Assembly: GCF_006345805.1 (NCBI RefSeq) | Contig: NW_021834306.1 | Span: 1 to 49,671 of the forward strand | Reading direction: 5' to 3' | Length of the DNA stretch: 49,671 nt | Origin: Octopus sinensis | Lineage: Eukaryota | Shown: positions 1,197 to 49,671 of the stretch, piece by piece | How positions within the stretch are numbered: position 1 is the stretch's first letter | Layout: every line of letters begins with the position of its first letter | Made by a program: the position numbers and the translations under genes | Notes under the pieces: model-generated | What the model saw: the letters and a program-made list of their open reading frames with translations, nothing else | Database searches by the model: none | What the model was told of the DNA's origin: nothing

Positions 1197-1958
<762 letters not shown>

Positions 1959-23769: not shown

Positions 23770-24650
23770 CAGTGTTTCCCAACCTGAGTTTTGCGCAAAA
23801 TTTTAAGGGTTCCGGGGAGATCAGAAAAGCATATCGAAAAATAAAAATTCGAAATTAATTCACACGCATTTTTTTCTTCATCGTGAGGCATTGGTCGCAA
23901 AAACTATTGGACATTAAATTTTTTTGGACATATTGTAAAAATTATTAATTATATCAGAATGAGGCCGTTGAAATTATGAAAGTTCTTGAAACTTTGTGAA
24001 AATACAGAACATTCATTTTTGCTTTTCCATGCTGAAGTAAGATGTCTCTCAAAGGAAACATGTTAATTCGTTTCTATGAACAAAGACACGAATTCTTGAC
24101 ATTCTGCATACAAGACAAGTTGGATAACTTTATTAAATGCCCTAATGATGAATGTTAATGTTGCAAGATACCATGCTTTACCGATATTTTAATAAACTCA
24201 ATGTTCTCAATATGCAAAGAAGAAATGAAAATCTGTTGAGTTTTACACACAAAATAGCTGGTTTTATGAAAAAAAATAAAATATTAAAAAACATATAACA
24301 AATGGAAACTTGAAAATGTTTTCTCATGTGCAAGAAAGGAAGTGTAAAGAAATTATTCCATTAATTATTAATCATTTGGAGTCATTATTTATAAATTCAA
24401 AGAATTATTTTTCATCCATATGATTGGGTGAGGAATCCATTTGTTGAGCACGAAATCACTTTAAACGAGCTATTATTTAAAGAGGAAAAAGAACCTGCGT
24501 TTATTTCAAGAGACAGAAGATAAGAAATGGAATATTTAGAGCGTAATTTCAAAAGAAAACAAAGCTTTAAGAGTTTTGATTTGGTTTTCAACGACTTATC
24601 GCTGCGAAGGTGGATTTTCTGTTTTAACAAAAAAATGCGCCAACTTACTA
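23770..24650 (+). mobile_element. hAT (Buster/ZBED5-like) relic with one TIR
   Basis: TIR CAGTGTTTCCCAACC at 23770 preceded by the Charlie-type target CTCCAGAG; translated remnants FLHREALVAK, HAEVRCLSKG, DWVRNPF, FSTTYRCEGGFS. Confidence 0.75.
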
Positions 24651-24899
24651 TATGTAGAACAAGGGTTCACCTCCTCGTGGAGACGATTGGATGCTGATTC
24701 TCTTTCAGTAACAAGCAGAACCAACCTTTTCCCCTTGCCAACCAACCTGTCAACGGTTTGGTTGGTAATGGCTACGAGACGAGCGTCAAGCTTACGTTCC
24801 CTGACTCTTTTGACTACAGATACGTTGTCAAAAATCAAAAAATATAAAGAATCCCAAAATTTCGATGAACTTTTGGATAAGAAGGAGAAATATAAAGTC

Positions 24900-25423
24900 A
24901 AACAGCATTCAGAAACCTTATCGTTCACGACATCAACAACAAAGCATATTCCTTTCAATATCTTTATGGGAGTAAAGGGACCAAATGATGAAGAAATAAA
25001 AGCTCTCTGCGCGTTTTATGGAGAAGATGCTGATGCAGAAATTCAATTTATTGAAAATGAAAATATTACGAAAAATTTGTTATCAACATACGAGAATCTA
25101 ACGAAAGCAAGAGAAAAAATGAAAAGCAAACGGAAATGGAAATTCGACAAAAACGACATTAAGGTCGTTTAACGCGTGTTATGATGAGGATTAATGTCGG
25201 GGATAATGTTCTATTACGTCAAGATATTGATGCTAATCTACAGAATAGAAATTATCCATTATATGATCAAATTTATGCGAAAAAATATAAAGTTATTGCC
25301 AGAGAAAATATGAATTTTGATATTCAAGATGAAGAAGGATCTGTCGTAAAAAGAAAAAATATTGCGAGACTTTATAAAATGATCATCGGGAACGGACATG
25401 GCTTTTCCAACGCATATCAATAG
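24900..25423 (+). mobile_element. C-terminal remnant of an integrase-type (Ginger2/TDD-like) transposase
   Basis: STTKHIPFNIFMG and INVGDNVLLRQDIDAN resemble the region downstream of the catalytic E in this integrase class. Confidence 0.5.
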
Positions 25424-25518
25424 CCATCTTGCGTGGGAATTGCCATTCCATCCTATCCTCTGCTGCTAATTAAATATACATAATTATCATAAATTGATTC
25501 ACTTTATAAAATTGATTA

Positions 25519-25907
25519 ATGTTTTTGTTTATAAAAAATAATATAAGTAAAACGAATGCCGGGAGCGCAGTGGACAGACTGTATGCCGCGGAAAAAACGA
25601 TGAGGGCAAAGGAGAGAAAATATGAAGCGCTACGAGATCGATTCGTGTTCTGTCCGATTGTGGTCGAGACAACTGGAGGAATAAGTGGGAAATCGCTTCG
25701 CTTCCTAAAGAAGCTTGGACGCTTAGCCACATTAAAAAGCCACGACACACGTGAGACCCGGTGGCTTCTCCAGTTGATCTCCGTTGCTATCGTGAGAGGC
25801 AACGCAACGTCAATTATGTTGGCGGGGTCCACTTTGGACAGATGGCTTTATTAGCTAATTAGTTCCTTTTTAACTGATTTATTAATTTATCACATACCAA
25901 AAAAAAA
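25519..25907 (+). mobile_element. 5'-truncated CRE-clade non-LTR retrotransposon 3' end
   Basis: AGSA...KERKYEAL..FVFCPIVVETTGG...QLISVAIVRGNA endonuclease C-terminus; A10 tract at ~25898-25907. Confidence 0.8.
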
Positions 25908-26689: not shown

Positions 26690-27080
26690 TGAATTTTCGA
26701 ACTCGAATCCACCATTTCTCTAATTTTTCTTGTTGTAGATAAATGCCTTGCATACAAGGTGAATTTTATAACATTTACATTAGGTTTTGATTGAATTAAA
26801 CCAAATTTAAATAATATTTCTACCACGGAATACAACGTCGTTTTTGCAACCACTGGATCAGGGTAAAATTAAATCGTAAAAATGCAATTTTAATTCTTTT
26901 AAATTTTTAAATATTATTTAGAACATTGAAGCTGGGATAAGTCAGTATATTGCATACAAAAAATTAAACTTAAAAGATGCAATATTATTCAAACATTATG
27001 CATCGAACATTAATAGTTCCTAAATATTCAATGCTTCACACACCAAAAATGAATTTAAAACATTGAAAGTATAAATTATA
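26690..27080 (-). repeat. Old dispersed repeat, inverted homolog of 39810-40160
   Basis: Collinear shared blocks such as TCCCAGCTTCAAT, ACGATTTAATT-TACCCTGATCCA, GTGGTAGAAATA, ATAAAATTCACCTT and TCTACAACAAG. Confidence 0.75.
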
Positions 27081-27959
27081 AAAATTTGACAAAATTTTGA
27101 CAACTTTGCAAGTACCGAATACTTGGATTCAAATTTATTCAACATAAAGCTAGATTCGTCCAGTAATCCTTTACAATCCCAACTTTAATAAGATTAAAAA
27201 TTAATTTACAACTTTATCCCCTATGGCAGGGTCGGTAAATACTTTTGGTAAAGTGCCAATTTTGAACATTTTTGGAAATTTCGAAAAATTGAAGAGGCTA
27301 CTTCTACACTTGTCCAAATCAAAAATTCAAACTCATAAAATTAAATAGACATTCATTTAAAAAATAATTAAGAATTCATTAAAAAATAAAATTAATTAGC
27401 CTCATTTCTTTGGTAGTTTCTAATCTCTGAGTCGTAACTCGTTAATGTTAACCTGAGGTTAAACTTCAGATTCGAATCTGTAATTTTGTTTCTTAATTTC
27501 GATTTTATATAATTCATGTACGAAAAACTTTGTTAACACATATAAGTGGACCCAAATATTGTCAATTTTTTTAATTAGAACTTTTAATATTCTTGAAGAT
27601 ATTTTTTTACAATTCAGATATTTAATTAGCAGACATTTATAAAAAGAATCTGAAAGAAAATTCCACTTTTTGAAAATCAAATCTTCAATTTTCTTTAGTA
27701 TAAAATCAATATCACTTTTAATTTTACCGAATCATTTTATGTTCCAAGGTTTCAAGTTCTTCTGAAAGGCGAATTAACTTTGATACCCATAATTCCTTAC
27801 ATGTCAAGTCCATTAGCTGCATTTCGAACTTAACTGCTTTAATTTCAAGTGGCAATAAATTTAAAGTGCTGACTTAGCACATAGAGGGTTTATAACGAAT
27901 GATAGAGTTACCTTTTATTTTCTAAAATCCTTAAACATTTTAATATTTAAACGTTCATT

Positions 27960-28200: not shown

Positions 28201-28562
28201 CCTCAGGAAACCTCGAGACACATAACGAACAAACAAAAACACCTAAGTATGACATTAACAATGTCATTTATATCACATGAATCATCTACTGCAGGGGTGT
28301 CAAACATGCGGCCCGCGGGCCGCATGTGGCCCTCGAAAGACATACAGTCTGTAACAGCAAAAAGGAATATTCTTAAAACACCATTTAAAATTAAATAATA
28401 TTCATTTTAAATATTTAAATCACTCTGATGACATTAATTATTATGTAATTACGTTTTTATAAATTTTAAAAATCTTTGAAAATACATAATTTTAGTTAAT
28501 TATTTGAAATTTTGTAACAGCAAAAAGTAATATATCAAAACCCAACAATAAAAACCATTGAA

Positions 28563-29542
28563 TTAATAGTTAGTATATTTTCCCTTGGCACGACAAAGGT
28601 CCAATGTTCTTTTTCTAAAACTTAACGACAATTTTTTGCATATTTCTTCATCAAATCCATTCCAAACGTTTAAAATTTCGGCCTTTAGATCTTTTAAATT
28701 CTGAGGCGCTCTTTCTGCTATTTTCTCTTTAATTATTCCCCATAAGTTTTCGATTGGGTTACAATCAGGAGATTGGGGGGGCCATTGCAACAATTCAACA
28801 TTTTTTTCATTCAAAAATTGTTTAGTAAGCTTTGCTGTGTGTTTAGGATCGTTATCCTGTTGGAACACAAATTCATCAAGCTGCATTTTTTCCGCATAAG
28901 AAAACAAATTCCTTGATAAAATTTCAATATATTTGTATTTGTCCATTATACCGTCAATAAAAACTAATTTGCCGACGCCATAATATGAGAAACAAGCCCA
29001 AACCATCAAACTGCCACCACCATGTTTTACAGTAGGTAAAATATTTTTGGGTTCTAACTTTTTATTGCGTTTTCGCCCAACAAAAGGCTTTCCATTGGTG
29101 TAGAAAAGGTTGAATTTACATTCATCTGAAAAAATAATGCTCTTAAGTTTTTTTTCATCATATTGAATCCATTTGCATGCTGCTTCATAACGTAATTTAA
29201 TTATTCGTGGTGTTAGCAATGGTTTTTTTATTGGTTTGTGTGCATATATTTTTTTCTTGTTCAACATTCTTTTAATTGTCATATGACTAATTGATAAGTT
29301 TCTCTCATTTTTCAATTTAATAGAAATTTTCCTAAGTGACAATTTGGAGTTTTGTTCAATTTCATAAGAAATCATGTTTGAAATTTCTTCAGAATAAATA
29401 TTATGACCACCACTGCCTTTTCTGGGTACCTTTGTATTGCTTAAAGACATTTTTTTATTTGTTTCGAAATTGTTGATTGGCTAACGTGCAGAATAGATGC
29501 AATATGTTTTTGCTTGAAACCGGCATTTTTTAATGAAATCAT
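28563..29542 (-). pseudogene. Tc1 DD34E transposase, one 1-nt frameshift in an A-run
   Basis: FSDECKFN, QQDNDPKH and WPPQSPDCNPIE give 34 residues between D and E. The N-terminal HTH (MISLKNAGFKQKHIASILHVSQSTIS) is out of frame at 29451-29456. Confidence 0.9.
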
Positions 29543-29795
29543 TTGTGCTATTTTATTTGTAGTCAGTTTAATTTCTATAAGTTATTATTAGGGCAACCAG
29601 AAATATGACCTTAAAAAGTTAAATATGACCGTAAAAAATATGACTTTATGACTTTAAAATTCTAAAATATAACTTAAAAATATTAAAATATGACCTAAAA
29701 AATCAAAATATGACCTATCGAATTTTGATTTTTAGATATTCTGAATTTGAAAATATGAAAAAATTAAACATTTCAATCAATCAATGAATTTATTA

Positions 29796-31122
29796 TGTCG
29801 CGACCCACGCTGGCGACCAGAGCGACCTTCATTGTTGACAAGATTGACAGGGCGGCCTACATAGTTTGACACTAATTACTGACTAAAGATAATTGCTAAA
29901 AAATCAAAAACTTAACATTTTTTTATCTCTATTCATAGTAACTATTTTGTAATTCGAACTAAATGTTGGTTAGGAAAGACAACTAACCATTAATCTGTAT
30001 TTAGACATTATATTTTTTCCCTTTTCTTCATATGGGGATTCAAATCTGTGTAGCTTCAATGACGGATTCGTCCCACAATCTTTTATTATTCGTTTCTAAA
30101 ATAAATATATCGTAAATTTACCATTAAGTTCATCTTCAACAAACATGCCTCGTTATTTTCATCTAAATTATAAATAAGAATATAACCTGGTATTTCATAA
30201 ATCACAGTGTTAATTCCAGAAATACCCCTAAACTTTTGAAGGGGGTCTCATTGATCGCCGAGTGGTGTGTCGTATTATAGGAAAAAGTTACTATTTAGTT
30301 AAGCGCTCAATTACACACTAATTTATTTCAAATTTATTCCTCGCATAGTTGAGCCATAAGTTGGTTTTTGAATTCCAACCCGTTGTCCGTTTGCAAGATC
30401 TGACAATATCCAATTTGATAAAACAATTTTGGAATTTATTCACCACTTCTTCAATTAAATTTCAAGTCTTACCAGAAGCAGTTTTATTTTTTAAAGATTT
30501 GCAGACAACAAATTTGCTGTAGATGTCAATAATTGGCAGTATCCAATTACATCCATCGTTAAACTCTTTATATCTTCTAACATCAATAAGATCCGCCTGG
30601 AATCTTTCATTGGGTTTTCCTGCAGTTACATGGTAATTAGAATCCGACATCTAGGTATATTTTTTTAAATACTTTCAATGGTAGGGCAAATTTACAAATT
30701 TCGCAGGCTTTTATAATTGGACGTTTTACAGTGAAATAGAATTCATTGCACTTTTTCTGAAGCTTTTGTATTCTCCAGTGGGATTCTTGGTGAATGGCGA
30801 ATGCTAGTGTCCTCATCTCCATTTCATTGTCCAGACAAATGACCAATTTGTGTTTTTGGTTATTCTCGTCCTTTAGATAAAGACTATGAGTTAGGAGTCG
30901 CAAATATACCGATCATTAATAATGATAAATTGAGTCGCTTTTTTCATGCTAACATATTTTGAGAGAAACCATAATTTTTTTTCTAAAATGACGCTAAACC
31001 ATTTCTTAAAATGAATTTTTTCCGGTTTAAATTAAATAACTAATCACCTGTCAAACTGAAGGTCATAACCTGTCAAACTGATGGTCGCCAGCGTGGGATG
31101 GTCGCCAGCGTGGGTCGCGACA
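29796..31122 (-). mobile_element. Ginger2/TDD-like integrase-type DNA transposon (family G1), internally decayed
   Basis: 24-bp perfect TIR TGTCGCGACCCACGCTGGCGACCA, 5-bp TSD TATTA; encodes an HQESH...CEIC zinc motif and rve core start PNERFQADLID...IIDIYSKF. Confidence 0.88.
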
Positions 31123-32450
31123 TATTATAATATTGCATCATATAATATTTAATATTTTCTGGCTTGAAGTTTCTATCCTTTTCGAGCAATTTATTCAGCA
31201 TAGAAAAGCTTCTTTCTGCAGATATTGATGTTGAAGGACATTTCCATAAGTAAATAAATGTTTCTGGAGAAATACTAGAAATTCTAGCATTTTTATATTC
31301 GTCCATGGTAACATACTTATCCGCTTTAAAAAATACTTGTTGATGTCACAATTATCCTCACCAAAATTAACGGAATCAATGAATTCAATTGCATCTTTAA
31401 TTGTATAAAATTTTTCTTGGCATTTTCTGATTTCATCAATAATAGGGTTGTATGAAGCCATTAACTCTGCCAGATTTTTCTCCAAATTTTCAGAGCTAAC
31501 AGCATTTTTCGCATTCATCACAATCTTTCCACAATTTGGATAGGATAAGACAATTTCGCGAACTCTTGAAAGATGTCGACTATAATATTTTGCTGCGTCC
31601 AACCAGCTGCCCCATCTTGTTAGAACAACATCAGGTGGAAGTCCAATAACTGTAAAAAGACTCCTCCGGGAGGGATTTTTTACAATCGACATTTTGATAG
31701 ACGAGATTAAGTCGTCAATATATTTATAATGTGCTCTAATCTTTAATGCACAATTGTGCAGAAGATGAGCAAAACAAGTTATATGAATCATTTTAATATA
31801 CATAACCTTCAATGTACTCCCTGCTAAAGTCATATAACGGGCAGCATCAGAAATAAATAATAAAAAATTTTCCCTTTTTATATCATAAATTCGAATTGTG
31901 TCATCCACAATTCTACAAATTGCAGATGCATCACAAATTTCAATTTCCAAACAATTTAATAAATAAATTTTTTCAGGACTTTCAATAGTCCCACAAAGAA
32001 CGTTAACAAATTTTTGTTTATTGATTTCCGTTTCATCAACAAGTATGAATATATCTTTTCCAGAAATAATCGTTTTAAGCATTTCAATCAATTGATATTG
32101 CAAATCTGGAACTATATTTCTGCACCAACTTTCGCTGGGAACAGTAAATCCGAGATTATTAAAAAAATTAATAAAGTGTTCATTTCTTATTTTGTAAAGA
32201 GGTATATTCGCCTTCGTCATCATTTCGACTAAGCAAATTCCGAAATTTTTCTTTGCTTCAAGTTTCGGAAGAGTGTTGAGTTCCGTTTGAAATTTTGTCT
32301 GTTCCTTTTTATGCCGGGTAGTTTCCCTGTCCGCACCACATTAAACGTTTTCGTAAAATTAACGAAAACTGAGCATTTCAAACAAAATAAACGTCCGCTG
32401 AATCAATCTGAAATTCAGACGGGTATCGTTTAATTATTTTATTTAACTTT
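31123..32450 (-). pseudogene. hAT transposase (DUF659 plus dimerisation domain), frameshifted
   Basis: ILVDETE, SDAARYM, HITCFAHLLH, PPDVVLTRWGSWL, TSISAERSFS. The last codons are cut off by the G1 insertion. Confidence 0.88.
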
Positions 32451-32891
32451 TGATTGTTAGATTGCTTTTGTTTCGGAATGTAAAAATCTATAATATTTAA
32501 GCGGCCAACTACCAAACGTGTGAAAACGTGTTATTGTCAAAATTTAAACAAAGATTAATAAAATATATGATTTAATAAATATAAATATGACCTAACAAAA
32601 AAAATATGACCTAACAAAAAAAATATGACCTAAAAATAATATGTCGCGAGCGCTGCGAGCGACCGAGCGCAGCGAGCGATCACTCAATTTCTAGATGCGA
32701 TCAATCAACAAATTCATAAATTGACAAATACCGGAGGAATAGGAATAGGAAGTTTTATTGGAAACAGAGAAGGGTTAAAGGTTAGGGGGAGTTTGTATAA
32801 TGAACAATAGGACTACCCTATCGACTTCTTCCCAGAAAAAAAGAGACCCCCTCAAGTAAATTTTTTTTTTTTTTTTTTTTTTTTTTCTTTT

Positions 32892-35521
32892 CTACCTCTG
32901 CAGGTACGTCCCAGTGACAATTGAGTTGGATTTATAACCACTTATAGCTTTTTTGACAGTTTCACCGACCATGGAGGATTTACTTTCAAGCCACAGGGGG
33001 ATTGGATCTTCAACTTTTTGGTGGTAAGCAAGCTTCAAAGCGAGCCTGCGAGACTTTTCAAATTTAGTTAAGATGGTGTCCTTCTTTTTAGAGAAGTACC
33101 ATCCCTCTTTTCCGTATAGTAGTCCCGGTAGGATCACCGTATTGAAAACGTAGAGGAAAGTATCAGGCTCCAAATTTAACTTCCTCAGGCAGAACAGAGC
33201 ATTAGTTGCTTTCCTTTTACTTAATTTTGCGTTTTCGAGATAGTTTCCCTTTTCATCGATGAACAAGCCAAGATATTTAATTGAGTTTTGTCGAGGTATG
33301 TTCTTGATCAGGCACGGTAAATTTATTAAATTTCTGCTTTCTGTGATTCTCAGTAATGCGGACTTCTCACGCGCAATAATGAACATATTTTCATCGCACC
33401 ATTGCTCCACTGTATTCATATATGATATAATCCTTTGTTCGGATAAGGCAGGTTTCGATGAAATGTCAAGGATTACAACATCATCGGCGTATATCAAAAT
33501 TTCCGTCCGTGTGTTGACAGGAGACGGCAGATTGCTCATCACAATGTTGAATAATAGAGGACTGAGGACTGATCCTTGAGGGACGCCTCTTTTAAGTTTC
33601 AGTTCATCCGAGTCATAGTTCAGAAAGCTTATCACAGAGCGCCTGTCGCGGAGGAAGTCTTTTAGCCATAGGAATAGTCCTTTGTCTATGTGACACTTCG
33701 CCAGATGTCTAAGGAGACCGAGGTGCCAAACCATATCAAAGGCTTTTGAGATGTCTAGAGACACAATTGTCAGACACTCTTTGAAATCCAGAGCCTTTAC
33801 AATCGACGAATTGAGTGTATAAAGACAGTCAGCACAGGAACGACCCCTCCGAAAGCCCCACTGCACGTCTTTGAGATAACCATTTCTCTCGACGTGTTCA
33901 GAGAGTCGTTCAAACATTACCCTTTCCATTATTCGACTGATGGTAGGAATTAGGCTTATAGGCCTATAACTTGTCGCCAAGTAACCAGGTTTTCCAGGCT
34001 TCCGTATCATCCTTACCTCCGTCAGTTTCCATGAAGAAGGGACGTATCCCAAGCTCACACTGCGGGAGAAGAGACATCCCAAATATTCGTAAAGTTGCTT
34101 GGGAGCTTCTTTGAACATGCGCATGGTTATCTTGTCCTTTCCCGGAGCGTTATTTTTGGAGTATCTAACTGCATTTTCCACGTCTTTGCACGTTATAGAT
34201 TCCGAGCACATTGGTAATGAGCTAAGATTGTCTTCCAACTCTTTTTCCATATCAAACAAAGCTGAATCAGATAGATTTGTATCCGGATTGACTTCTTGTA
34301 TTCTTTTGAGACTATCAGCAAATATGTTCGGGATTTCTTCATGAGATGCAGGGGATCCATCTTGTTTTAGCAGTTTAGGTATAGTTTTCTCAGACGTCGA
34401 GGTTAATTTCGAGTAGACCTTCCAAAAATTTGGACTTCCTTTATGTAGCTTTTTGCACTCAGTATTCCATTTTTATCCTTCGCCACCTTCGCCGATTTTC
34501 TTATTTCTTCCGTAATGGTGAAGATTTCACTTTCCAAAACGGACCGGTCACGAAAATCTGCGCAGCGCCGGAGTTTGTTCCTTAGACATTGTTTTTTCCT
34601 TAGTAGGATTTCAACATTCATGTTTGGCATGTGAGTTTTCCTATTGTTTGAGACGATTTTTGTAGAATATGTTTCCAGATAAGACTTTATGTATCCAATA
34701 AGGGAATTGCTAGACTTCTCGAGGTCCTCAGATGAAGAATTTTCGTCAAGTTTAGGAGCGAAATTGCTCAGATAAAGTGTAAAACATTTTCGGTAGTGTT
34801 CCCAGTTTATAGTCGAGAGGTTATATCGTATAAAAGTTGGTTTACCCTTTAAAGGTCCAAGGTTGAGTTTGTATAAAATTGGTAGATGGTCACTTCCAAT
34901 ATCATTTAAGGTGTACGGTTGTTCCATAAATTGAAGAGTAGACATAGAGACCAATGCTACGCCCAAATAGTCCCACCCTCCTGGTGAGTAATGATTTGGG
35001 GTTTTTGATGTGATGACCGAGAAACTGAGAGATTCTGAAAGCTTCTTAAGAATGATGCCATCCCTGTTGGTTCTCAGACAGCCAAAAGATGTGCATTTGG
35101 CATTTAGATCACCGAGGAGTATTGACAAATGATTGTGTTTATCGGCAAAAAAGTCCTTGATAAGCGATGAATAATTGGAAAGGGATTTTGAGTACATCCC
35201 TCCGATTGTTACCCACCCTTTTTCCAGAAGGACGTCGATTGTGAGGAATTCACACAATTCCTCGGACACAATTTTTAGATTTTTCACCCTTAGAGTTGAT
35301 TTGTAGTAGATAGAAGTGCCTGTTCCAGCGATCGAGCCCGGCTTCCACTTAATATCAAGGGAACGATAGCCATCCAAGTAGTAATCATCATGTTTTTTGA
35401 TTTTTGTTTCGTTTACGATCAAAAGGTCCACGGGGTTATGGGATAACATATCCTCAATCTCTGAACGCCTTCTCTTTAGAGAACGTGCGTTCACAGCGAT
35501 AATAGACAGAAAGGGGCTCAC
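32892..35521 (-). pseudogene. LINE ORF2 (AP endonuclease plus reverse transcriptase), frameshifted near 34260-34400
   Basis: VNARSL, VNETK, GDLNAK, SDHLP; YRPISL, QWGFR, LDISKAFD, GVPQGSVLSPLLF, YADD. Confidence 0.93.
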
Positions 35522-36685
35522 GCCTGATCAATCCTTTCCCTTCCAAGAGAAAGGGACAACAGATTGTTGATATCGAGACCTTTTTCATCGCATATAGCGA
35601 TTATTTTGCGAATCATAGAGGTAAGCTCAACGTCGATAGTTGGTGCTTTCCTCTTAAAGCGGGTTGGAGGCTCTGTGTGTTGTGTATTGGGAGGCAAAGT
35701 TGCGTCTTCACTAACATCTGTTTGCGTTGAGGAGTCAAAACAGCGGGAAATTGTGGGTTTTCGCCATACAGATTCAACGGCCTCCGCTTTTGACCATACA
35801 GTTTTTGAGTGTTCTGCTTTGGCCAGTCTGTCCCTGGCACTGAGCTGCTTTTTTAGTTGTTCAGTGGCTGCCTTAGCTGAAGAGCAGCCACCGTAGCAAG
35901 CCAAATGCCCACTCAGACCGCAGTTTATACATTTTTTCTCAGTTTTTCCTTTAATCGGGCACATTTTCATATTATGATCACCACCACAGAAAAGACATCT
36001 TTCCACTTCTTTGCAGAAGTTAGCAATGTGACCAAATTGTTGGCAGCGAAAGCATCTTGTTGCTGGGTTTTTAAACCATTCGCATCGTATTTTTTGAAAT
36101 CCCACTTCGATTCCCATCCTTACAAGCGAAGTGGCTTCTGCCCTCGAATTCAGACTCAACTTTCCACAGGTATACTCCGTCCATTTTTGTAGAACCGTTG
36201 GAAAGTAAAACCGGGGTTGAGAATTTCTTTGAGGTAAAGATCCAGGTCTTCCTCGGAGACCCAAGATGGTATTCCCTTCAAGACTACGGTCGATGGTTGC
36301 AGACTGCACGCAGAAATATAATGGCCGTCCTGGCCAAATGGTTTGTTATACTCGAAGTCATTCACAAACGAGTCCCTATCACTAGAATTTGAGAATTCGA
36401 GGGTAAAGTCCCCAGACTTCCTGGCAGTAATTCGGGCCTTCTGTGCAGTCTCGGATTTGGTTAGAATATTAAAGGACTTTATTCGTCCAATCGCATAATT
36501 TTTTATCTGCAGCGAGAGGACAAGAGACTCAGTACAGTTGGATTGTTCAAAGAGACTTGAGAGGAGTGTGACCCCTCCTCATCTTTGATACGGATTTCAT
36601 CTTTGCGTTCAAGCTCTTGAGACACAGAAGATTTTGAGTTTTTGATAGTTTTATTTTTTGCACCACGAGAAACGAAACGTGTCAT
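35518..36685 (-). pseudogene. LINE ORF1 (gag-like), frameshifted
   Basis: RCFRCQQFGHIANFC, CLFCGGDHNMKMC and CINCGLSGHLACYGGC zinc knuckles, split across three ORFs. Confidence 0.88.
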
Positions 36686-36928
36686 GAAATTTTTTTTCGA
36701 CATAATATTTTTGATTTTTAAAAATTTCTGTTGATTTCTGTTGATTCCTGTTGTGTACATGATAAATAAATAATAACTAGGGCAACCAAAAGTCATATAA
36801 GTCATATTATTTTTTATTGGTCATATTGATGTTATTTCTATAATTAATAAACTATTATTATATTTTTTAATAGTTTTATTAATTTTTTAGGTCTTATAGG
36901 TCATATTTTATGCCGTTAGGTCATATTA

Positions 36929-37516
36929 TGTCGCGAGCGCAGCGCGCGACCGAGCGCTAGACGCGACTTTGACACCTAACAAGCCTATCATCAACAAATA
37001 TATTTATTAATTATTTAAAATTTTAACATGATTTAAAATTAAAATTGAAATAACTTAAGTTTTCCATTGAATCCCATAAAATAATTTATAAGTAGACCTT
37101 AATAGAAAAAGTAAAATCAATGAATACTGAACGCTAATTTGGTTTAGGTTGTGAGGGGGGTAATAATTTGACAGATCTCATTGCTATTTTTTCGTTTTAA
37201 TCTCTAAAATTAGGTCTTCTAATCAAAAATGAACTGTGCAGACAGGCTTGCTCCTTCAGAAGATCTTGTTTTGACATTTTTATAAATTATGAAGCATTTA
37301 GATTTTTTCTCATTATTCTAAAATATCAATTATAAATTTTAAAATATTATTTTTATTTATGAAATCGGTTTTAAAGCTCATTCTGCTTGGCATCGATTTT
37401 AATTTTTGTTATCGAATATATTTAATCCCAAATACAAGCCTGGGTATTTGTCAATTTATAGATTTTTTGATTGATCGGATCTAGAAATTGAGTGGTCGCT
37501 CGCTGCGCTCGCGACA
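36929..37516 (+). mobile_element. TGT...ACA non-autonomous element (family G2), right copy, 588 bp
   Basis: TIR TGTCGCGAGCGCAGCG(C/A)GCGACC, flanked on both sides by TATTA (36924-36928, 37517-37521). No coding capacity. Confidence 0.88.
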
Positions 37517-37837
37517 TATTACTTTTTGCTGTTACAAAATTTCAAATAATTAACTAAAATTATGTATTTTCAAAGATTTTTAAAATTTATAAAAGCGTAA
37601 TTACATAATAATTAATGTCATCAGAGTGATTTAAATATTTAAAATGAATATTATTTAATTTTAAATGTTGTTTTAAGAATATTCCTTTTTGCTGTTACAG
37701 ACTGTAGGTGCGGCCCTCAGCGTACTTTGCCAAACATAAGTGCGGTCTGATTTAATGGCTATAAAATGCAAAAAATTATTTTTTATTTTTTACATTTAAT
37801 TAAAATTTTTAATTGTATTTTTAAATCGTGTTTGTTA

Positions 37838-39107
37838 ATGCCACGTGCTTCTTCTGGAATAAAAAAGAAACGGTGCTTGAAAGATGAACGGAGAGTGTTT
37901 CAAGATAAATGGGAACTTCTCTATTTTTTCACAATGGTTGATGGAAAAATACATTGTTTGATATGTAACAAGTTTATCGCTATACCGAAAGAATACAACC
38001 TAAAGAGGCATTATCAATCTAATCATCTATCATACATTTATTTCGAAGGTATTAAGTTGCTTATTAACCAAGAAGGTCCAATGCGTGTTTCAAAGCTAAA
38101 TGAATTGCGAAAAAATTTATCTGCCTTACAAACTCATTTCACAAAAAATCATATTCGAACTACTGCATTAGTCACTGCAAGCTATGAAATCAGTAGAATG
38201 CTTGCAGTAAATGGAAAATCATATTGTGATGGTGATTTCATCAAGCAATGCCTTGTAAAAACAGCGAATATTATTTGTCCAGACGACGCCCACTTGTTTA
38301 AAGATATTTCATTAACAATAAACACTGTTCCCGAACACATTAATGAAATGGCATTGAATTTGAAACACCAATTAAAGTCTGATTTGTTAAAATTCGAATA
38401 TTTTTCAATTGCAATCGATGAAACGGTCGACGTCGTTGGAATTGCACTTTTAGAGCGTGTGATTCAGATTTTAATATTTATGAAAAATTTCTCGAACTAG
38501 TACCAATGCACGATACTACTACAAGTAAAGATATCTTTATAAAACTACTACAAATTCTCTTTGAATATGGGTTTGATTTGAAGAAGCTTGTGTGTTTATC
38601 TTTAATGTTTCCAATGCAGATGAAGGGCGTTCATGTGGGCAGGATCGAACCTTTCAGTAGGATCTCCCTCGCTTGAATCGGGGACCACGGGGATTATAAT
38701 AATTAACTGGCTTACCCGTGTTTGGTCTTTAAATAAAATAAAAAAAATAAATAAATGCAGATGAAAGTTTACAAATGGAACTATTGGAAATCCAATCAGA
38801 TTCTATACTTAAAGCTAAATATTTGGAGGTTGGAATACCTGCTTTCTTTTCATATCTTCCTGGAAAGTTTAAAAACTTTAAAAAGTTTGCAACAAAAATC
38901 ATTGCTATGTTTGGTTCGACATATGTGTGTGAACAGCTTTTTTCATTTATGAAAATGACAAAAACTGCTCAAAGAACAAGACTGACTAATGAACATTTAT
39001 CCTCTTTAATAAAAGTCGGAACTACTCGAATAGCTCAGCCTGACATATCAAAAATTGTATCTAAAAAAAGATGTCAATCCTCTGGAAGCAGCTCTCACCA
39101 AAATTAA
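37838..39107 (+). pseudogene. Transposase of the outer hAT, with central deletion and retroposon insertion
   Basis: RVFQDKWE, CLICNK...NLKRHY, ASYEIS, GDFIKQC, AIDETVD, then LQMELLEIQSD...MFGSTYVCEQLFS...RTRLTNEHL. Confidence 0.88.
38625..38753 (+). mobile_element. Short retroposed insert (SINE or LINE 3' end)
   Basis: 12-bp TSD AATGCAGATGAA (38613-38624, 38754-38765) and A-rich tail. Removing it restores the hAT frame FNVSNADESLQMELL. Confidence 0.88.
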
Positions 39108-39809
39108 AGGGCGATAATTGAATAATTTAGTTTCTCTTATTTTGGTTATTCATCATAATAAATATCAGAACTAATCTTCCCTTAATGAGAAATTATTATA
39201 AATGCGGCCCTCAAAGCGAAATGAGTTTGACACCCCTGATCTACTGCAAATGAATTAGCCAATTTCATGTCAGAAACTTGTTGAACAGACACATTCGAAG
39301 ACATCTTAAAAGTCCTGTAGGCTACTATTTTTGCAGATAAAGGTACACTAAAGTCTTTCGAATCCGCAAATTTCGAGGATCGGAAAAATCTGGCGGATTT
39401 GAAAGACTTATGGATTTTTTAATCCATTAAAAATTTAAATTATTAAGCCAAAAAAATTAATTAAAACCAAAATAATGAGTCAGTTTCGAATTTTTCTTTT
39501 TCGAGTTTGGCTCATTGAAGATCCAATGTTTTCAATATACTCAAGATTTTCTATATTAAAGAATATTCTTGATTATAGAACTCTTTTAATTTGTTTAAAG
39601 CGATAAAAGCCTCGTTAATAGTAAACACTCTGACTTTGTTCACACTGTTCTTCGCTAATTTCTTGTTCTATTTTTTCTGAATTATTTAATTCAAGTTCTT
39701 CACTTTCGTTATATTCAATCTTAATATAAAGACTCTCTTCTAATGGATCAATAATATCCATTTTTTCCAGAATATGGTCATAAGTTTCAATAAAAGATTT
39801 TTCACAATT

Positions 39810-40160
39810 AATATTTTCACTGTTTTGAGTCCATTTTGCATGAGTGAAACAATTTAAAATTAATGAACTTTCTATTTTGTTCCAAGCATAATTAATATGT
39901 GAATAATATTGAATCTTTTATGCTTAGTTGTTTGTGTGAAACATAGGGGTTTGTCCCAGCTTCAATTTTTTAATTATATTAAAAAAATTTTAGAGAATTG
40001 AAGTTACATTTATACGATTTAATTATACCCTGATCCATGGGCTGTAAAAAAGATGTTGTATTAGGTGGTAGAAATAACATCTCAATTTGTTTTAGTTCAA
40101 TGTAAATTTCATAAAATTCACCTTATGTGCAGGAGATTGATCTACAACAAGTAAAATTTT
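39810..40160 (+). repeat. Old dispersed repeat, inverted homolog of 26690-27080
   Basis: Same collinear blocks as listed for the partner copy. Confidence 0.75.
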
Positions 40161-40167
40161 TCGCAAA

Positions 40168-40445
40168 GTGGAAAAATACAAGAATCTTGCCACTCGGCAT
40201 TCCTTCGTGCCTGTGGCTCTTGAGACATCAGGCGCTTCCGGTCCGCAGACCTCATGCTTCTTAAAAGACCTCGGTATCCTCATCGCTCGGAAGAAGATGG
40301 ATGCTCGCGAGTCCTCTTGGTTGAGGCAGAGGATCTCACTCGCAATCGTGCGTGGGAACGCGCAAGCAATCCGTTCGGCTGGATTAATTTAGTTAACTGA
40401 CAATTGTTTTGTTCATTTAAAGCAATACTATGTATAAAAAAAAAT
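40168..40445 (+). mobile_element. CRE-clade retrotransposon 3' end (second subfamily)
   Basis: KYKNL..HSFVPVALETSG...LRQRISLAIVRGNA followed by an A-tract at ~40436-40444. Confidence 0.8.
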
Positions 40446-40515
40446 TGATTATTTATAAATAAATTTAATTCAAAAATTATTTAAAATTAGGATACATGGC
40501 GGATTCATTATAATA

Positions 40516-41782
40516 TGTCACATGGGCGACTATGTCGCTATGGGCAGCCAGTACTTTCACGTGTTTCTATGGAAACCGCAGAAAAGGTATTAAATATTGA
40601 ATATAGCAATTTATATATGGAAGAGTGTAGATATAATCAATTATTCTAATTTAAAATTACATTTGAATTATCTTTTAAAAATGGCTTACCCAAAAGTATA
40701 TTAATTTAACAGCGTGGTTACTCACACTTTGTGATGTCTGGGTTTAAGGGTTACGTCAGAAATATTACGAATACAATCAAATTAAAGAAGCGTTAATCGG
40801 GATATTCCCGGAGGATATGAATGCTCGAAGCAAACACCGGTTGGCCAAAAAGGCTTCCATTTTTGTCAAAAATGTCTGAAGAATCGTCAGCAGAACATCA
40901 TTTAATTTCGAGTTAGGGTTACGTTAGGGCTTGGGTTAAGGTTAGGGTTAGATTTGAATATTTATTTTGTCACTTGCCAACGTTTGGGTTAGGGTTAGAT
41001 TTGAATATTTATGTTGTCACTTGCCAACGTTAGGGTTAGGGTTAGATTTGAATATTTATGTTGTCACTTGCTAACGTTAGGGTTAGATTTGAATATTTAT
41101 GTTGTCACTTGCCACGTTAGGGTTAGATTTTGAATACATTTATGTTGTCACTTGCCAACTTAGGGTTAGGTTAAGGTTAGGGTTAGATTTGAATATTTAT
41201 TTTGTCACTTGCCAACGTTTGGGTTAGGGTTAGATTTGAATATTTATGTTGTCACTTGCCAACGTTAGGGTTAGGGTTAGATTTGAATATTTATGTTGTC
41301 ACTTGCTAACGTTAGGGTTAGATTTGAATATTTATGTTGTCACTTGCCAACGTTAGGGTTAGATTTTGAATACATTTATGTTGTCACTTGCCAACGTTAG
41401 GGTTAGGTTAAGGTTAGGGTTAGATTTGAATATATTTATGTTGTCATTTGCCAACGTTAGGGTTTGGGTAAGGTTAGAGTTAAAGTTTTTACAAACTTTG
41501 CAAAAAATTTGATGTAAATTATAATTTGCTAATGTTGCAATTTATATTATCAAAAAAAAATAATTCACATTATAATTTGCTAATGTTGTAAATAATTTTA
41601 CTATTTTAAAGCAAGCATGGTTCAAATATAAAACATCATTTCCTCAAAAATTTAAAGTTCAATCATTAGTTCGGATCGCTTGTTTTTATATTATTTGGCC
41701 TTTAGTAAATATTTGCTATGTAGTTGCCATGGAAACACGTAAAGGCCAGGTTGCCCATAGGGGTCTGATCACCCATGTGACA
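40516..41782. mobile_element. TGT...ACA non-autonomous element (family G3) carrying a telomere-like minisatellite
   Basis: ~60-bp imperfect TIR TGTCACATGGG-N11-CTATGGGCA...ACGTGTTTC(C/T)ATGG and exact TSD TAATA (40511-40515, 41783-41787). Confidence 0.88.
40913..41480 (+). repeat. Minisatellite: 11 copies of ATTTGAATATTTATGTTGTCACTTGCCAACG separated by TTAGGG-type repeats
   Basis: Read unit by unit. Units 1-5 recur as units 6-10. Confidence 0.97.
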
Positions 41783-41879
41783 TAATAAATATGACGGATT
41801 CGAGAATTTTTTATAGGAAAAATGGCGGATAAGAAAATTTATTAGTTATAATTGGCATATTCGAGAGACTTTACTGTCA

Positions 41880-42420
41880 TTATCTTATTCACGATTTCTG
41901 CCTTATTTGAAAAATCGTTAAAAAGTTCTTCACAGATTTAAAACATGTCTTGATAAATTCGCCATCGGTAAATAGTTTTCCACTTTTTGTGATCTCGTGG
42001 CTTATCAAAAAGTTGACAATATTTGCAGTCCCGGCAGTGTGTTGCCAATATTTAAAAGAGGAATTATCAATCTGATTATTCTTTGCAAGTTCTTCTACAG
42101 ATTTCTTTAGTGAATCACCAATTAGATATTTTTTGCAAAATTTGAGTGTTTTGTGTTAAGTGTCTCTCTAAATTTGACTTTTTGTTTTAATTTAAAGTTT
42201 CCTGGAAAATAAGGCATTTCGGTAGTTGTTCTAAATTAGATGTGAACCAAGATACAATCCATATTGATTGAAAATGTCGGTAATTATAGATTTTTTTGTT
42301 TTATTTCTAGGTACATATAATGTACCATCAAAAATTCATGTTAAACATGTAAAGATTTTTTTATTAACAGAATATTTATTAATAAAGAAAAAATTAACAA
42401 AAAAATTAAAAATGGAAAAG
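41880..42420 (-). mobile_element. hAT (SPIN-like) transposase N-terminal relic
   Basis: FLISHEITKSGKLFTDGEFIKTC and a degraded upstream zinc-finger segment. Confidence 0.65.
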
Positions 42421-42534: not shown

Positions 42535-44210
42535 TACCATTTACAACTCTATTTTGCAAGTACGAAATTTAATTTGCGGTCAGTAAACTCATTCCTGCAA
42601 ATAAGAAATGATTTTTGCGGTTAAGAAAATCGATTTTGCAATCAAGAAAATTAATTTGCGGTCATGAAAGTCGGTTTTGCAAGTGGGAAATTAAATTTGC
42701 GGCTAGGAAAATCGATTTTGCTAGTAGGAATACTACCTTTGCTAGCAGGAAATTCAATTTGCAAATTCATTTTGTATAACCTTGACGCAACATTAATGCG
42801 TTTAAACAATATATAAGTATTTTTGCGTGTTAAAATTAAATTAAAAATGGCACAAAATCGAGAAGTCTCCGAAAATTCACAGAAAATGGTACAGAAGACA
42901 TTTGCATAAACAGACAAGGAAGAGGACATTACGGAAAATATTCAATGGAAAAACGGAAATTGATCATAGACACACACGATAGAGATGGAGATTGGCGCTC
43001 TTATGCAGGTCTTTGGAGTGAAAGAAAGGACCGCATATTATTGGATTAAAAATAAAAAAATTGAATTACTTCCTAAAGGAGGAAAGATTTGGAGTAAAAA
43101 AAGTGAAGAAATTATATCTGCTCTATTAACTTGGATTGAATGCGATTGCCAGATCTCATTGGTCGAATGTACTGAAAAATTCAAGCTCAATTCAATGTTA
43201 CTGTTTGTGTAAATACAGTAAAAATTGGCTTGATGGACAATTAATTTCATTGAAATCAATTCGGCCAGTCACAATAAACATGAATACAGAGGAAAATAAA
43301 ATAAAAAGAATGGAGTATTTAACACGTCTTTTGAATGCGAGATCTAAAGGAAGAACTATAATTTGGATAGATGAGTCAAATTTTAATTTATTTTGTCGTC
43401 GTAAAGAAGGACGTTCAAAAATTGGATGTCGGTCTATTGTTCTTGCACCCAGTAGCAGAGGGTCAAATTTACATTGTATAGCTGCAATGTCATCATCACA
43501 AATATATAATTTTAAGTGCAGAGAGAGGCTCATATACAGGGGAGTCCTGTAAAACATGGTTTAGGCAACTTATTAATGAATGTGATGCATCAGGAGTTAC
43601 ACATCCAACATTCGTAATTGATAATGCTCCTATTCCAGTCAACTTGAGTCTGTAATAAATCCAGGAGAAAATAGTGAATTATTAAGACTAGCGCCATATT
43701 CTTATTTAATCAACCCAAAGAATTGCTTGGAGTTCATTCAAAGCTGAAGTAAAGAAGAGATTCGTGAAAATATGGATATAATTATAAATATAAAAAAAAA
43801 TGCAGAGGGACTGTCAATAACCGAATTCAGAATGAGAATCTTGGAAAGGATTGAATTGAGGCAAAAGAAGTATTAACTCCACAAAAGTTAATGGAATTCT
43901 CGAATCATGTGGAGAGATATTACCCCTCAGTAATTCGATGTGAAGATTTAAACTGACAATTCTTATTTGTAATAAAAATTTCTTGCAAAATAGAATTTCT
44001 CACTTGCAAAAATGGTTTTCATGACCGCAAATTTAATTTTCTTGATTGCAAAATTGGTTTCCCAGTCGCAAAATTCATTTACTATTTGCAAAAATGATTT
44101 TCCTAACCGCAAACCGGATTTCTTACATGCAAAATTGCCATTCTTGACTGCAAATTTAATTTCCAGATTGCAAAATGATGTTCTCAGCTGCAAATTGACT
44201 TGTAATGGTA
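42535..44210 (+). mobile_element. IS630-like Tc1/mariner-superfamily element with ~250-bp repeat-array ends and frameshifted transposase
   Basis: Ends TATACCATT...AATGGTATA; IWIDESNFNL, VIDNAP and LRLAPYSYLINPKE (about DD33E after one frameshift). Confidence 0.88.
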
Positions 44211-44400: not shown

Positions 44401-47400
44401 ATGCCGGAAGCGCAGTGGACAGACTGTATGCCGCGGAAAAAAAACGATGAGGGGCGAAGGAGAGAAAATATGAAGCGCTACGAGATCGATTCGTGTTCTG
44501 TCCGATTTGTGGTCGAGAAATGGAGGAATATCAAGACCAATTGACAAAGTGACCTCTTTTTTATTGTTGTAGGGTGGAGGATGAGAGGATTGAGTTTGAT
44601 TATGTCTTGACGAGCACACACGACTGTATTATGGCACTAAGGGGAGTCCATTCAGTCATTCGTGGGATGCTCAACCCGAACACTGTCAAGTTGGGAGACT
44701 CTCTAGGATTGTTGTCCCCAATGTTGGTTCATGCAGTGCTTTATCGGTACTCTTATTTTGAGAATGTGCAGAATATTCCACGAAAAGTACTTGTCTGTGG
44801 TCAATTCGTTGGAATGTCTTCCATTTCAGGTGATTCCGATTGTGTTGGCGAGGTTGTGGGTGTTTTCGAATGTTAGATTGGAGAAGACCTACAACGAGTT
44901 ATTCAACAGAAGGACTGCTTTATACGAGGATTGGGGAGAGAGTGCAGAAGAGGACGTATTTGCGGTCACTCGACCATCAGAGTTCATGTTTCAAGACAGC
45001 CGAGTCCAAATCATTGCGTACTAGAGCACTGTGTGACGAGATTGAGAAGATGCGATATGTTGGTGGCCCCTCTCATGCCCAGCTGACGAGAGACCCGACT
45101 GTCGAGCCACATGTCACGTTGGACTATTCGACTATTGGAGTGATGGAAGACGCCGCTGATTTGTTGATATATTACGTCAAGAGACAGAACTGTACTGACT
45201 GGGTGACCATTTAGACTCCAATGAGGACAAAACGAGGATAAGCGATTGGTTTATGTGTTTGGCTGACTTGGTGTTTATATCTCGTGGGGTTTTGTCTGAT
45301 GATGAAGGTTTGTGAGTTTTTCTTATTGTAGAGTGGGATGTGTTGGGGATGTGGAGGAAGATTTGCGACTGTTTTATGGGGGTGTCCATTGGTACTGCTT
45401 CCTCAGACTGCATCATTTATTGTGCAATCGACTTGCTCGATTACAGGAGATTGTTACTGAGAGAATGCAAAGAGAAAAGGACTTGGATGATGACTCGGGG
45501 ATTGCTCAACTCGTCGGACTCGACAATACAAGTATTCCCTCAATTCACGTGGCAGAACGGGATAGAATGAACTATTCTTATGGACTTCAATTAATTCGTG
45601 ACTTGGTGGATGGGGTAGTCGACTCCTCCGCCTTTGAGGATCGGATGAGGGAAGTTTTGGAGTCAATGCATTTATGTTATTCACAGTGGACAAACTATTG
45701 TACCACTCTGCCAAAAATGTATTGGTTTGTGTTATTTTGTAGTTGCAGAGAATTGTGATGCGAGAATATAGTGTTGATGACGGGTCATTTTGTTTTATGA
45801 GGTTGTATGACAGATTTGTTAATCCTGGGGAATATTTTGTGGTAGTGTCCCACGTCTATCAACTCTACAAATTCATTTTTGTATCTCCTTTGTGCTAATA
45901 TGTCAGAACAGGAATCCCCGTTCTTTGGAAATCACTCTTCGACCGAGTAGACCGGCTAATGACGGCGCTCGCATTCCTTTCCTGGCCAGGTTTGGGGAGG
46001 CATTCATTTTAGGAATTTGAGGAAGTCTAGTTTGAGGAGATGTGTGCCTGATATTCCCGATTCGGAAATGTTTGTGCGAGTAGGACGGTCAGGGAAAAGA
46101 GTATATTTGTGTGTGTATGTTAGTGGTCTTGGAACGAGCATGCGCGGAGAAGAATGACTGTGGATGGGAGTCCGATTTGGTTAAAGGGAATATTCCTTTT
46201 GTGAACTGCACTGACTATATGTTTATAACTTGTCTTATCATTCTTCTTTATGTGATTAAGTGGAATTGACAGACCTATAAGTGCTGTTCGATTGGTTCAA
46301 TTAAATTATATTTGTGACATTAATGGTATTTATTTTGTTCAGAGGTTACTTTTACCAATCGATACCTGACCTGGTTGTTCAGACTGTTAATGTTCTAATC
46401 GATATTCTTTAAATTTAATTATGATTAGTTCATTTATTTAACCGCCAAGACCACGATAAAAATCACACAAAAGTCACGTGATCCCGATTTATTTATTAAC
46501 CCCCAAGCTTTCATGGCAAACCCAGCACAAACAGTCATAGCTAACTAATCGAATGAAAAAGCCAATTCGCCCAGTTCCCATTTGTCAGCCTCCTACCGTC
46601 GCTCACCGCACGTCATTTGTTTTCGGAAGGGTTTTTCATAATGAAGATTTTTCATTGGTAATGTGATCAAGGGATCCCGATGCACTCGACACGGACCTCA
46701 TCTTCGCTCGGAGATCTTTCCACGAGCCCACACAAGATCACACCGGGCGGCAGGCCGTTTTTGACGTAGCATTGACCTCAAAGTGCTGACAGATATCTTT
46801 GTCAATCCACTTATTTTGTATTGTTTTCCAGTGTGCTTATTAAGAATAATGTTTATACAAGATTAACGAATTTCATTAACCCGATTATTTCGAAAAATTA
46901 AAGTCGCGCAACATTCAAGTGGTGATTAGGTCACCAAATAGACTACATTATTAGCAGAAAGTCCACCTGCTAAATAATACACATTCAGAATAAAAAACAA
47001 GAACTGATAGCGACCACAGGATCTTCATTGCAAAACTGCGTAAAAAAGCATCCAACTGGTAAAAATACATTGAAAGGCAAGACCAAATCCCAATATATAC
47101 TTTTAGACAAAAAATTGAGGTTAGAGACATTTGTAAAGAAACATTGGAAGCAAATCGAGACTCTTATGGAGAAAATCGCACCCGAATCATCAGTAAAAAC
47201 TCTGTGGGATCAAACAAAGCAGGTAATCTTAAAGTCGGCCAATATATTTCTTGGAGTTCAAAATTATCGTGCCCTAAAATTAGATAACCCCTAAACGTGC
47301 CAGATATGGTAAAGCATCGCAGAGAGCTATGGCTAAAAGTGCCAAACACGTCTGACAAGAGTAACCCGAAAGAAAAACCAGTAACCCAGAACTGATTGCA

Positions 47401-49671
47401 TGACACTTTGAAACACTGTTGAATAAAGAAAATAAAGACTTTACTCCTTTCCAGAAAGAAGCAAAGGCGCTAAAAATCCCAATCACATTGGAAGAGATGA
47501 AATTAGCGATAAATAAACTGAAGAAGAAGAGTCCAATCACAGTGGAAAAAGTGAAATCGCCTGACAAGATAAGCCCTCAGCTTCTAAAATATTGGCCAAA
47601 GAAACTTAGCGACAGAAAACCCATAAATGACATCTTTGAAACTAATATCGATCTATGCATTGAAAATGCATTATTAATGCCCATAAAAACCGAAAAAAAC
47701 CAAACGGACCAGTTGAAAATCTCTGACCTAATACTCCTGAATTCGATGCGAAAGGTGCTGCCAAACATTGCACTAAGCCAGATAAAAAGTGTGTCGGATT
47801 AATACCGACAAGCAAGTCAAAGTGGGTTCCGAGAAGGGAGGTCTACGGCAGAGATTGTATTGGTAAAGCACTAAAGATTTAAGAGCGCAACGACCGTGTT
47901 GAGAATACATCTCTCCAGAGCAGTGTTTCCCAACCTGAGTTTTGCGCAAAATTTTAAGGGTTCCGGGGAGATCAGAAAAGCATATCGAAAAATAAAAATT
48001 CGAAATTAATTCACACGCATTTTTTTCTTCATCGTGAGGCATTGGTCGCAAAAACTATTGGACATTAAATTTTTTTGGACATATTGTAAAAATTATTAAT
48101 TATATCAGAATGAGGCCGTTGAAATTATGAAAGTTCTTGAAACTTTGTGAAAATACAGAACATTCATTTTTGCTTTTCCATGCTGAAGTAAGATGTCTCT
48201 CAAAGGAAACATGTTAATTCGTTTCTATGAACAAAGACACGAATTCTTGACATTCTGCATACAAGACAAGTTGGATAACTTTATTAAATGCCCTAATGAT
48301 GAATGTTAATGTTGCAAGATACCATGCTTTACCGATATTTTAATAAACTCAATGTTCTCAATATGCAAGAAAGAAATGAAAATCTTTTGAGTTTTACACA
48401 CAAAATAGCTGGTTTTAGGAAAAAAATAAAATATTAAAAAACATATAACAAATGGAAACTTGAAAATGTTTTCTCATGTGCAAGAAAGGAAGTGTAAAGA
48501 AATTATTCCATTAATTATTAATCATTTGGAGTCATTATTTATAAATTCAAAGAATTATTTTTCATCCATATGATTGGGTGAGGAATCCATTTGTTGAGCA
48601 CGAAATCACTTTAAACGAGCTATTATTTAAAGAGGAAAAAGAACCTGCGTTTATTTCAAGAGACAGAAGATAAGAAATGGAATATTTAGAGCGTAATTTC
48701 AAAAGAAAACAAAGCTTTAAGAGTTTTGATTTGGTTTTCAACGACTTATCGCTGCGAAGGTGGATTTTCTGTTTTAACAAAAAAATGCGCCAACTTACTA
48801 TATGTAGAACAAGGGTTCACCTCCTCGTGGAGACGATTGGATGCTGATTCTCTTTCAGTAACAAGCAGAACCAACCTTTTCCCCTTGCCAACCAACCTGT
48901 CAACGGTTTGGTTGGTAATGGCTACGAGACGAGCGTCAAGCTTACGTTCCCTGACTCTTTTGACTACAGATACGTTGTCAAAAATCAAAAAATATAAAGA
49001 ATCCCAAAATTTCGATGAACTTTTGGATAAGAAGGAGAAATATAAAGTCAAACAGCATTCAGAAACCTTATCGTTCACGACATCAACAACAAAGCATATT
49101 CCTTTCAATATCTTTATGGGAGTAAAGGGACCAAATGATGAAGAAATAAAAGCTCTCTGCGCGTTTTATGGAGAAGATGCTGATGCAGAAATTCAATTTA
49201 TTGAAAATGAAAATATTACGAAAAATTTGTTATCAACATACGAGAATCTAACGAAAGCAAGAGAAAAAATGAAAAGCAAACGGAAATGGAAATTCGACAA
49301 AAACGACATTAAGGTCGTTTAACGCGTGTTATGATGAGGATTAATGTCGGGGATAATGTTCTATTACGTCAAGATATTGATGCTAATCTACAGAATAGAA
49401 ATATCCATTATATGATCAAATTTATGCGAAAAAATATAAAGTTATTGCCAGAGAAAATATGAATTTTGATATTCAAGATGAAGAAGGATCTGTCGTAAAA
49501 AGAAAAAATATTGCGAGACTTTATAAAATGATCATCGGGAACGGACATGGCTTTTCCAACGCATATCAATAGCCATCTTGCGTGGGAATTGCCATTCCAT
49601 CCTATCCTCTGCTGCTAATTAAATATACATAATTATCATAAATTGATTCACTTTATAAAATTGATTAATGT
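44401..49671 (+). repeat. Permuted segmental duplication: 44401-44530 matches 25556-25683, then 44529-49671 matches 20373-25522
   Basis: Near-identical by eye, with identical ORFs offset by ~24.15 kb. The junction GGAGGAA-TA-TCAAGACC shares TA between the two donors. Confidence 0.96.
44529..46204 (+). pseudogene. SIN3: 5'-truncated SIN3 copy (no PAH domains), with indel frameshifts
   Basis: Starts mid-exon at YQDQL; +1 frameshift at ~44935 and further indels at 45240-45670 relative to 20373-22054. Confidence 0.85.

Follow-up and report, generated by a model that had tools for sequence, protein, structure and literature searches.

Duplication of a TA dinucleotide at the target site is the hallmark of Tc1/mariner-type insertion. 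In the TBE elements of Oxytricha the inverted repeats are tipped with true telomeric repeats; these elements also code for a transposase of their own and generate a 3-bp duplication. Internal tandem repeats have often been described in transposons and MITEs (reviewed in PMC6947457; for Tetris see PMC4079207 and for a MITE with a minisatellite PMC4596501). Xstir of Xenopus, the pearl/BIV160-type elements of bivalves, Tetris of Drosophila virilis and MITEs with hitchhiking microsatellites are comparable to the element described here, a non-autonomous element with terminal inverted repeats that we term G3. It lies in VCDQ01006449.1, an unplaced contig of the Octopus sinensis assembly GCA_006345805.1, and the full length of this contig, 49,671 nucleotides (49.7 kb), was taken as the window of analysis.

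Like the Tc1/mariner-derived (Stowaway-like) MITEs, G3 has terminal inverted repeats and a TA duplication, lacks coding capacity and is inserted into AT-rich, transposon-dense DNA. It is larger than typical MITEs at 1.27 kb, mainly through its array, and its terminus reads WTATGTCRC, whereas the Tc1-like elements of the window have CAGT-type ends. The features shared with transposons containing internal tandem repeats are a minisatellite between the terminal repeats, apparently amplified from the element's own sequence, and a higher-order duplication, with the possibility of acting as a seed of satellite DNA; the G3 unit differs from theirs in containing telomere-like TTAGGG cores. The likeness to the Oxytricha TBE consists of a plausible tie to the Tc1/mariner superfamily, the combination of telomere-like repeats with a transposon and an organism reported to eliminate DNA, but the motifs of G3 are internal, degenerate and spaced, in a gene-free element flanked by a TA duplication. 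Interstitial telomeric sequences are also degenerate, internal and telomere-like, with one orientation and interspersed with other sequence. In G3, however, such repeats are the cores of 41–60-bp units within a bounded transposon, and neither a long head-to-tail tract nor a telomerase-RNA-derived flank nor any sign of chromosome fusion is present. We therefore place G3 among systems of known kind: it is probably a MITE-like non-autonomous transposon of Tc1/mariner type with a passive, internally amplified telomere-like minisatellite.

G3 spans positions 40513–41785 on the plus strand (1273 bp in all, of which 694 bp remain when the array is discounted). Its terminal inverted repeats were located at 40513–40596 on the plus strand, with a well-aligned core to about 40576, and at 41703–41785 on the minus strand. 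They are 64–84 nt long with the end sequence WTATGTCACATGGG, and their identity falls from 93 % over the first 14 nt to 77 % over 64 nt and 69 % over 88 nt. The first-pass annotation had proposed matching terminal inverted repeats, and an inverted repeat does bracket the region, with a local alignment score of 57 for the two ends compared with 16±2.4 for shuffled sequences (z of about 17). The 12-mer ATGTCACATGGG was found in the window only at 40515–40526 on the plus strand and 41772–41783 on the minus strand, against an expectation of 0.12. Two sub-repeats of approximately 18 nt, TATGTCACATGGGCGAC and TATGTCGCTATGGGCAGC, can be read off the sequence inside the left terminal repeat.

The exact limits were set by comparison of seven related ends, namely those of G3 and of two related elements, E2 and E3, including an extra left end of the latter. 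All seven read TA followed by WTATGTCRC, while the bases beyond the TA vary. The frequency of the TA dinucleotide in the window is 0.072, so that TA at seven of seven ends would be expected by chance with a probability of about 1e-8. The limits 40513–41785 and a TA duplication, with copies at 40511–40512 and 41786–41787, were adopted because TA alone is common to the seven ends, and the terminus shared between G3, E2 and E3 therefore indicates insertion of Tc1/mariner type. The first-pass annotation was right that a bounded element with a target-site duplication is present, but the element does not end at 40516 and 41782, and the duplication is the dinucleotide TA in a different place rather than a longer sequence.

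Several other duplications were considered and rejected. TAATA, the sole flanking match when the element is bounded at 40516–41782, is partly terminal repeat. This and the other longer candidates, ATAA and AAT, each fit G3 alone, which they do because the flanks are AT-rich, and they were discarded because the WT that follows the TA belongs to the terminal repeat. An 11-bp Mutator-like duplication was suggested by the 11-mer ATGGCGGATTC in the left flank (40496–40506, plus strand) and its near-copy ATGACGGATTC in the right flank (41791–41801), but E2 and E3 have no comparable repeats. The underlying motif, ATGRCGGAT(TC), was counted four times where 0.45 would be expected: at these two flanking sites, once 31 bp further downstream (41822–41830) and once within E2 (30059–30069). 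The third and fourth copies identify it as a recurring local motif, and no homology was seen between the G3 flanks and the interior of E2. Most simply, the 11-mer would be a short tandem repeat that pre-existed at the target site. The presence of ATGRCGGATTC on both flanks is nevertheless unaccounted for by the TA duplication and counts against the TA-insertion account.

The longest reading frame of G3 is 48 aa, indicating no coding capacity and no transposase gene. The element would have been mobilized in trans by a transposase encoded outside the window, in which no autonomous element with WTATGTCRC ends was found, both Tc1-like elements ending otherwise; a partner may be present in another part of the genome. 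No second copy of the G3 arms or array and no empty-site paralogue were found in the window. Metagenome scans with the terminal-repeat pattern and with the unit pattern gave no matches, exact protein look-ups of the reading frames from G3 and from the hAT fragments described below gave none, and there were no known RNA families or tRNAs in the window.

The two related elements are both non-coding and both lack an array. E2 (29793–31125, minus strand) is oriented opposite to G3 and carries the same TA and WTATGTCRC terminus; its terminal repeats are perfect over 24 nt (ATGTCGCGACCCACGCTGGCGACC), and it contains a single CCCTAA. E3 (32639–37519, plus strand) has terminal repeats of approximately 95 nt and is split by a minus-strand LINE at about 32861–36700, with the further related left end at 36926. 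The LINE is nearly intact (32861–36309), with zinc knuckle, endonuclease and reverse transcriptase frames and an A31 tail that begins directly past the stop codon of the reverse transcriptase frame; its best database relatives are only about 33 % identical. Tandem repeats of 19–21 bp with the core AAATATGACCT adjoin the E2 and E3 ends in both orientations (29601–29717, 32560–32633 and, inverted, approximately 36780–36925), and may be sub-terminal repeats of another element that received the E2 and E3 insertions.

Between its arms G3 holds a compound minisatellite of 11 units and a degenerate tail (40912–41490, plus strand), as delimited by Tandem Repeats Finder, unit parsing and hexamer counts, and its telomere-like units begin 399 bp inside the element, between the terminal repeats. 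Each unit (40–60 bp, the first being longer) consists of a degenerate telomere-like tract of 10–27 nt followed by an AT-rich spacer of 30–34 nt, GATTTGAATATTTATGTTGTCACTTGCCAAC. The tract amounts to a degenerate (TTAGGG)1.5–4, as in GTTAGGGTTAGGGTTA and TTAGGGTTAGGTTAAGGTTAGGGTTA. Tandem Repeats Finder returned periods of 41, 47 and 235 bp rather than 6 bp. Five unit types of 57, 47, 47, 41 and 44 bp make up a 235-bp higher-order block, of which the array contains 2.3 copies. The identity between blocks 1 and 2 is 98.3 %, far above the likeness among the five unit types within a block, and because of this identity the last growth of the array can be attributed to a recent block duplication. 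This growth within the array may postdate the insertion of G3, and the first-pass annotation's statement that the array travelled with the transposon is not supported here.

On the plus strand of 40912–41490 there are 18 copies of TTAGGG and none of CCCTAA, where approximately 0.1 same-strand hexamers would be expected, in agreement with the one-strand orientation of the G-rich repeats claimed in the first-pass annotation. In the rest of the window TTAGGG is close to background, with 5 copies on the plus and 10 on the minus strand. The same annotation had described a 570-bp TTAGGG-rich array, and this description did not hold: the cores are spaced and degenerate, perfect hexamers cover 108 of 579 nt (19 %) and no perfect telomeric run exceeds 17 nt. 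The cargo of G3 is thus a minisatellite with short degenerate telomere-like cores and not a telomere-type array. An isolated, degenerate and putatively telomere-like stretch, GGGTTTAAGGGTTACGT, was also read off the sequence in the left internal arm (40740–40756, plus strand). A spacer motif, TTTTGTCACTTG, resembles the terminus TTATGTCACATG and was considered as a pseudo-end, in which case the array would be a series of binding sites for transposase; the likeness is not significant because approximately six matches with two or fewer mismatches are expected in the window by chance.

The origin of the unit was addressed through the related elements. The left arm of E3 contains one unit-like motif, AGGGTTAAAGGTTAGGGGGAGTTTGTATA (32771–32799, plus strand), which aligns to the core and the spacer start of the G3 unit with z = 5.4, a value reached by none of 200 shuffles, and which has the same orientation to the ATATGTC end as in G3. 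Outside the G3 array, GGTTAGGG was found only in this arm when both strands of the 49.7-kb window were searched. Convergence is possible, as the match extends over 29 nt and derives largely from the telomere-like core. Neither the G3 arms nor E2 contained a recognizable single-unit progenitor. Because E3 holds one such motif, the motif is probably native to the transposon lineage. This speaks for amplification of a sequence intrinsic to the element rather than for capture of telomeric DNA, and on sequence comparison the telomere-like motif would probably belong to the lineage with TA and WTATGTCRC ends and have been amplified inside G3.

The proposed course of events is one in which a segment of approximately 47 bp within G3, already holding a short telomere-like motif of the transposon lineage, would have undergone ordinary tandem amplification by replication slippage or unequal exchange. 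Single units would have multiplied first, and the five-unit block of 235 bp would have been duplicated later and recently. The telomere-like cores would then be passive passengers, the structure being explicable without a telomere-related function.

The principal alternative is that the telomere-like tract came from outside G3 and was tandemly amplified thereafter, either by telomerase adding TTAGGG during repair of a break (e.g. after aborted excision) or by pick-up of a subtelomeric minisatellite. Short telomeric-like repeats are known to be inserted at break sites in vertebrates (PMC8537989), interstitial telomeric sequences in clusters are frequently degenerate, with other repeats lying among them (PMC9498494), and the strict single-strand orientation in G3 would be consistent with such a source. 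Inheritance within the lineage fits better, however, with the similar single motif of E3, which has a comparable place and the same orientation, and the array retains no long perfect tract, 17 nt being the maximum. An outside origin is regarded as rather unlikely, and amplification of a lineage motif as the preferred reading.

G3 lies within a nest of transposons. The first Tc1-like element (28335–37705) ends in TA followed by CAGTCTGTAAC and has inverted repeats of approximately 200 bp that are 98 % identical, a TA duplication and two copies of the motif GTAACAGCAAAAAG in each inverted repeat. It retains an intact transposase frame of 295 aa (28563–29450, minus strand), for which the closest proteins, from metagenomes and microsporidia, are only 50–55 % identical, and it is swollen to 9.4 kb by the nested E2, a hAT fragment, E3 and the LINE. 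The second, degraded Tc1-like element (approximately 42545–44194) ends in TA followed by CCATTTACAA and includes a DDE_3 fragment at 43136–43552. Its long inverted repeats are composed of 41-bp sub-repeats (TTTGCGGTCA...GAAAATCG), another instance in the window of tandem repeats within transposon arms. Three hAT-type transposase fragments, with DUF659 and a Spin-doc-type zinc finger, were identified at 31195–32223 (minus strand), 37766–39107 (plus strand) and 41889–42100 (minus strand); as the last lies just downstream of G3, the element may have inserted into or beside a decayed hAT copy. Upstream of G3, and ending 120 bp short of it, lies a 74-aa C-terminal frame (39799–40392) that matched no Pfam family; given an inverted paralogue of 75 % identity at 26722–27084, this frame probably represents a piece of some other repeat family.

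A direct duplication of 5.15 kb with 99.67 % identity (20373–25522 and 44529–49671) covers the 3′ part of a Sin3 gene, and its second copy reaches the contig end. A 130-bp segment with 93 % identity follows copy 1 (25556–25683) and precedes copy 2 (44401–44530), and since these copies and segments flank it, the 18.7-kb transposon nest that holds G3 lies between repeat units. The two copies reflect either tandem duplication in the recent past or an artefact of assembly. This bears on whether G3 is mobile at all, as a similar picture could in principle arise from a fortuitous or locally formed inverted repeat enclosing a minisatellite, or from an error in a contaminant contig of low coverage. 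Only one G3 copy occurs in the 49.7-kb window, short duplications arise readily in AT-rich flanks and the near-identical 5.15-kb duplication that runs to the contig end is suspicious. Against this, the G3 end alignment lies approximately 17 standard deviations above shuffles, the same terminus and TA recur at five further ends in E2 and E3, and the E2 terminal repeats are perfect over 24 nt, making a non-mobile origin very improbable.

The source organism was assessed from the host genes of the contig. The Sin3 gene, at approximately 18.9–22.2 kb, is readable only with introns of 24–27 nt that have pyrimidine-rich ...TAG ends, and the spliced product contains the PAH, Sin3_corepress and Sin3a_C domains in the correct order. 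A weak match to Parvo_NS1 in the frame 20576–21058 (E = 0.004, below the cut-off) falls within this gene and was taken as chance. Among animals, introns of the 24–27-nt type have been reported only from myxobolid myxozoans and Dicyema japonicum (PMC13644364). The latter inhabits, and was sequenced from, O. sinensis and has a genome with 36.7 % G+C and 48.9 % repeats (PMC6736024), to which the G+C and repeat content of the window are similar. Owing to these introns and this likeness, the contig probably derives from a dicyemid, a parasite of the kidney, and not from the octopus itself, and the dicyemid host guessed at in the first-pass annotation is thereby backed by an intron class reported outside Myxozoa only in D. 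japonicum. The other host genes are a polyubiquitin of three units that are 84–85 % identical in DNA (1197–1910, minus strand), the POP5/Rpp14 subunit of RNase P (9460–9918, minus strand) and an intron-less galactose-3-O-sulfotransferase (16147–17235, plus strand) with nearest relatives, from various animals, of about 32–34 % identity. Only two intron-less genes were called on the part of the contig examined.

A dicyemid host raises the question of function, as chromatin diminution and the formation of extrachromosomal circular DNA have been reported in dicyemids (PMC6543705). On this view selection would maintain the array as a module that distributes telomere-protein binding sites, seeds new telomeres or marks DNA for programmed elimination or circle formation. 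The excess of 18 same-strand TTAGGG copies over approximately 0.1 expected would be compatible with it, and telomere-like repeats at break sites may aid healing (PMC9498494). The cores are, however, short, degenerate and separated by 30-nt spacers, the relatives E2 and E3 have no array, telomeric repeats are absent from both contig ends and nothing in the sequence tells the array apart from a neutral minisatellite. TTAGGG as the telomere repeat of the dicyemid host is itself an assumption, telomeres being unmentioned in two dicyemid genome papers (PMC6543705, PMC6736024). We consider a selected role highly unlikely, and the link of G3 to telomeres or DNA elimination is speculation. Still less credence is given to an extension in which the WTATGTCRC lineage carries the motif as a candidate module and G3 copies would be preferred sites of breakage, telomere healing or excision during the chromatin diminution and circle formation reported for the dicyemid soma, which if true would make it an animal counterpart of the ciliate telomere-bearing elements.

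Passive amplification within a MITE-like transposon thus remains the reading preferred here, and the description of G3 is an annotation-level result concerning an element of ordinary type whose motif is unusual. Nothing in the present data indicates that the array is a site of breakage or telomere addition, although this would be a notable finding if true. G3, E2 and E3 form a hitherto undescribed group of small transposons, inserting at TA, in probable dicyemid DNA, and a 49.7-kb contig of the O. sinensis reference assembly is flagged here as probable parasite DNA. Within this group, G3 shows a short internal motif growing into a minisatellite. Because somatic DNA rearrangement has been reported in dicyemids, a catalogue of their transposons and telomere-like repeats would be useful for long-read tests.
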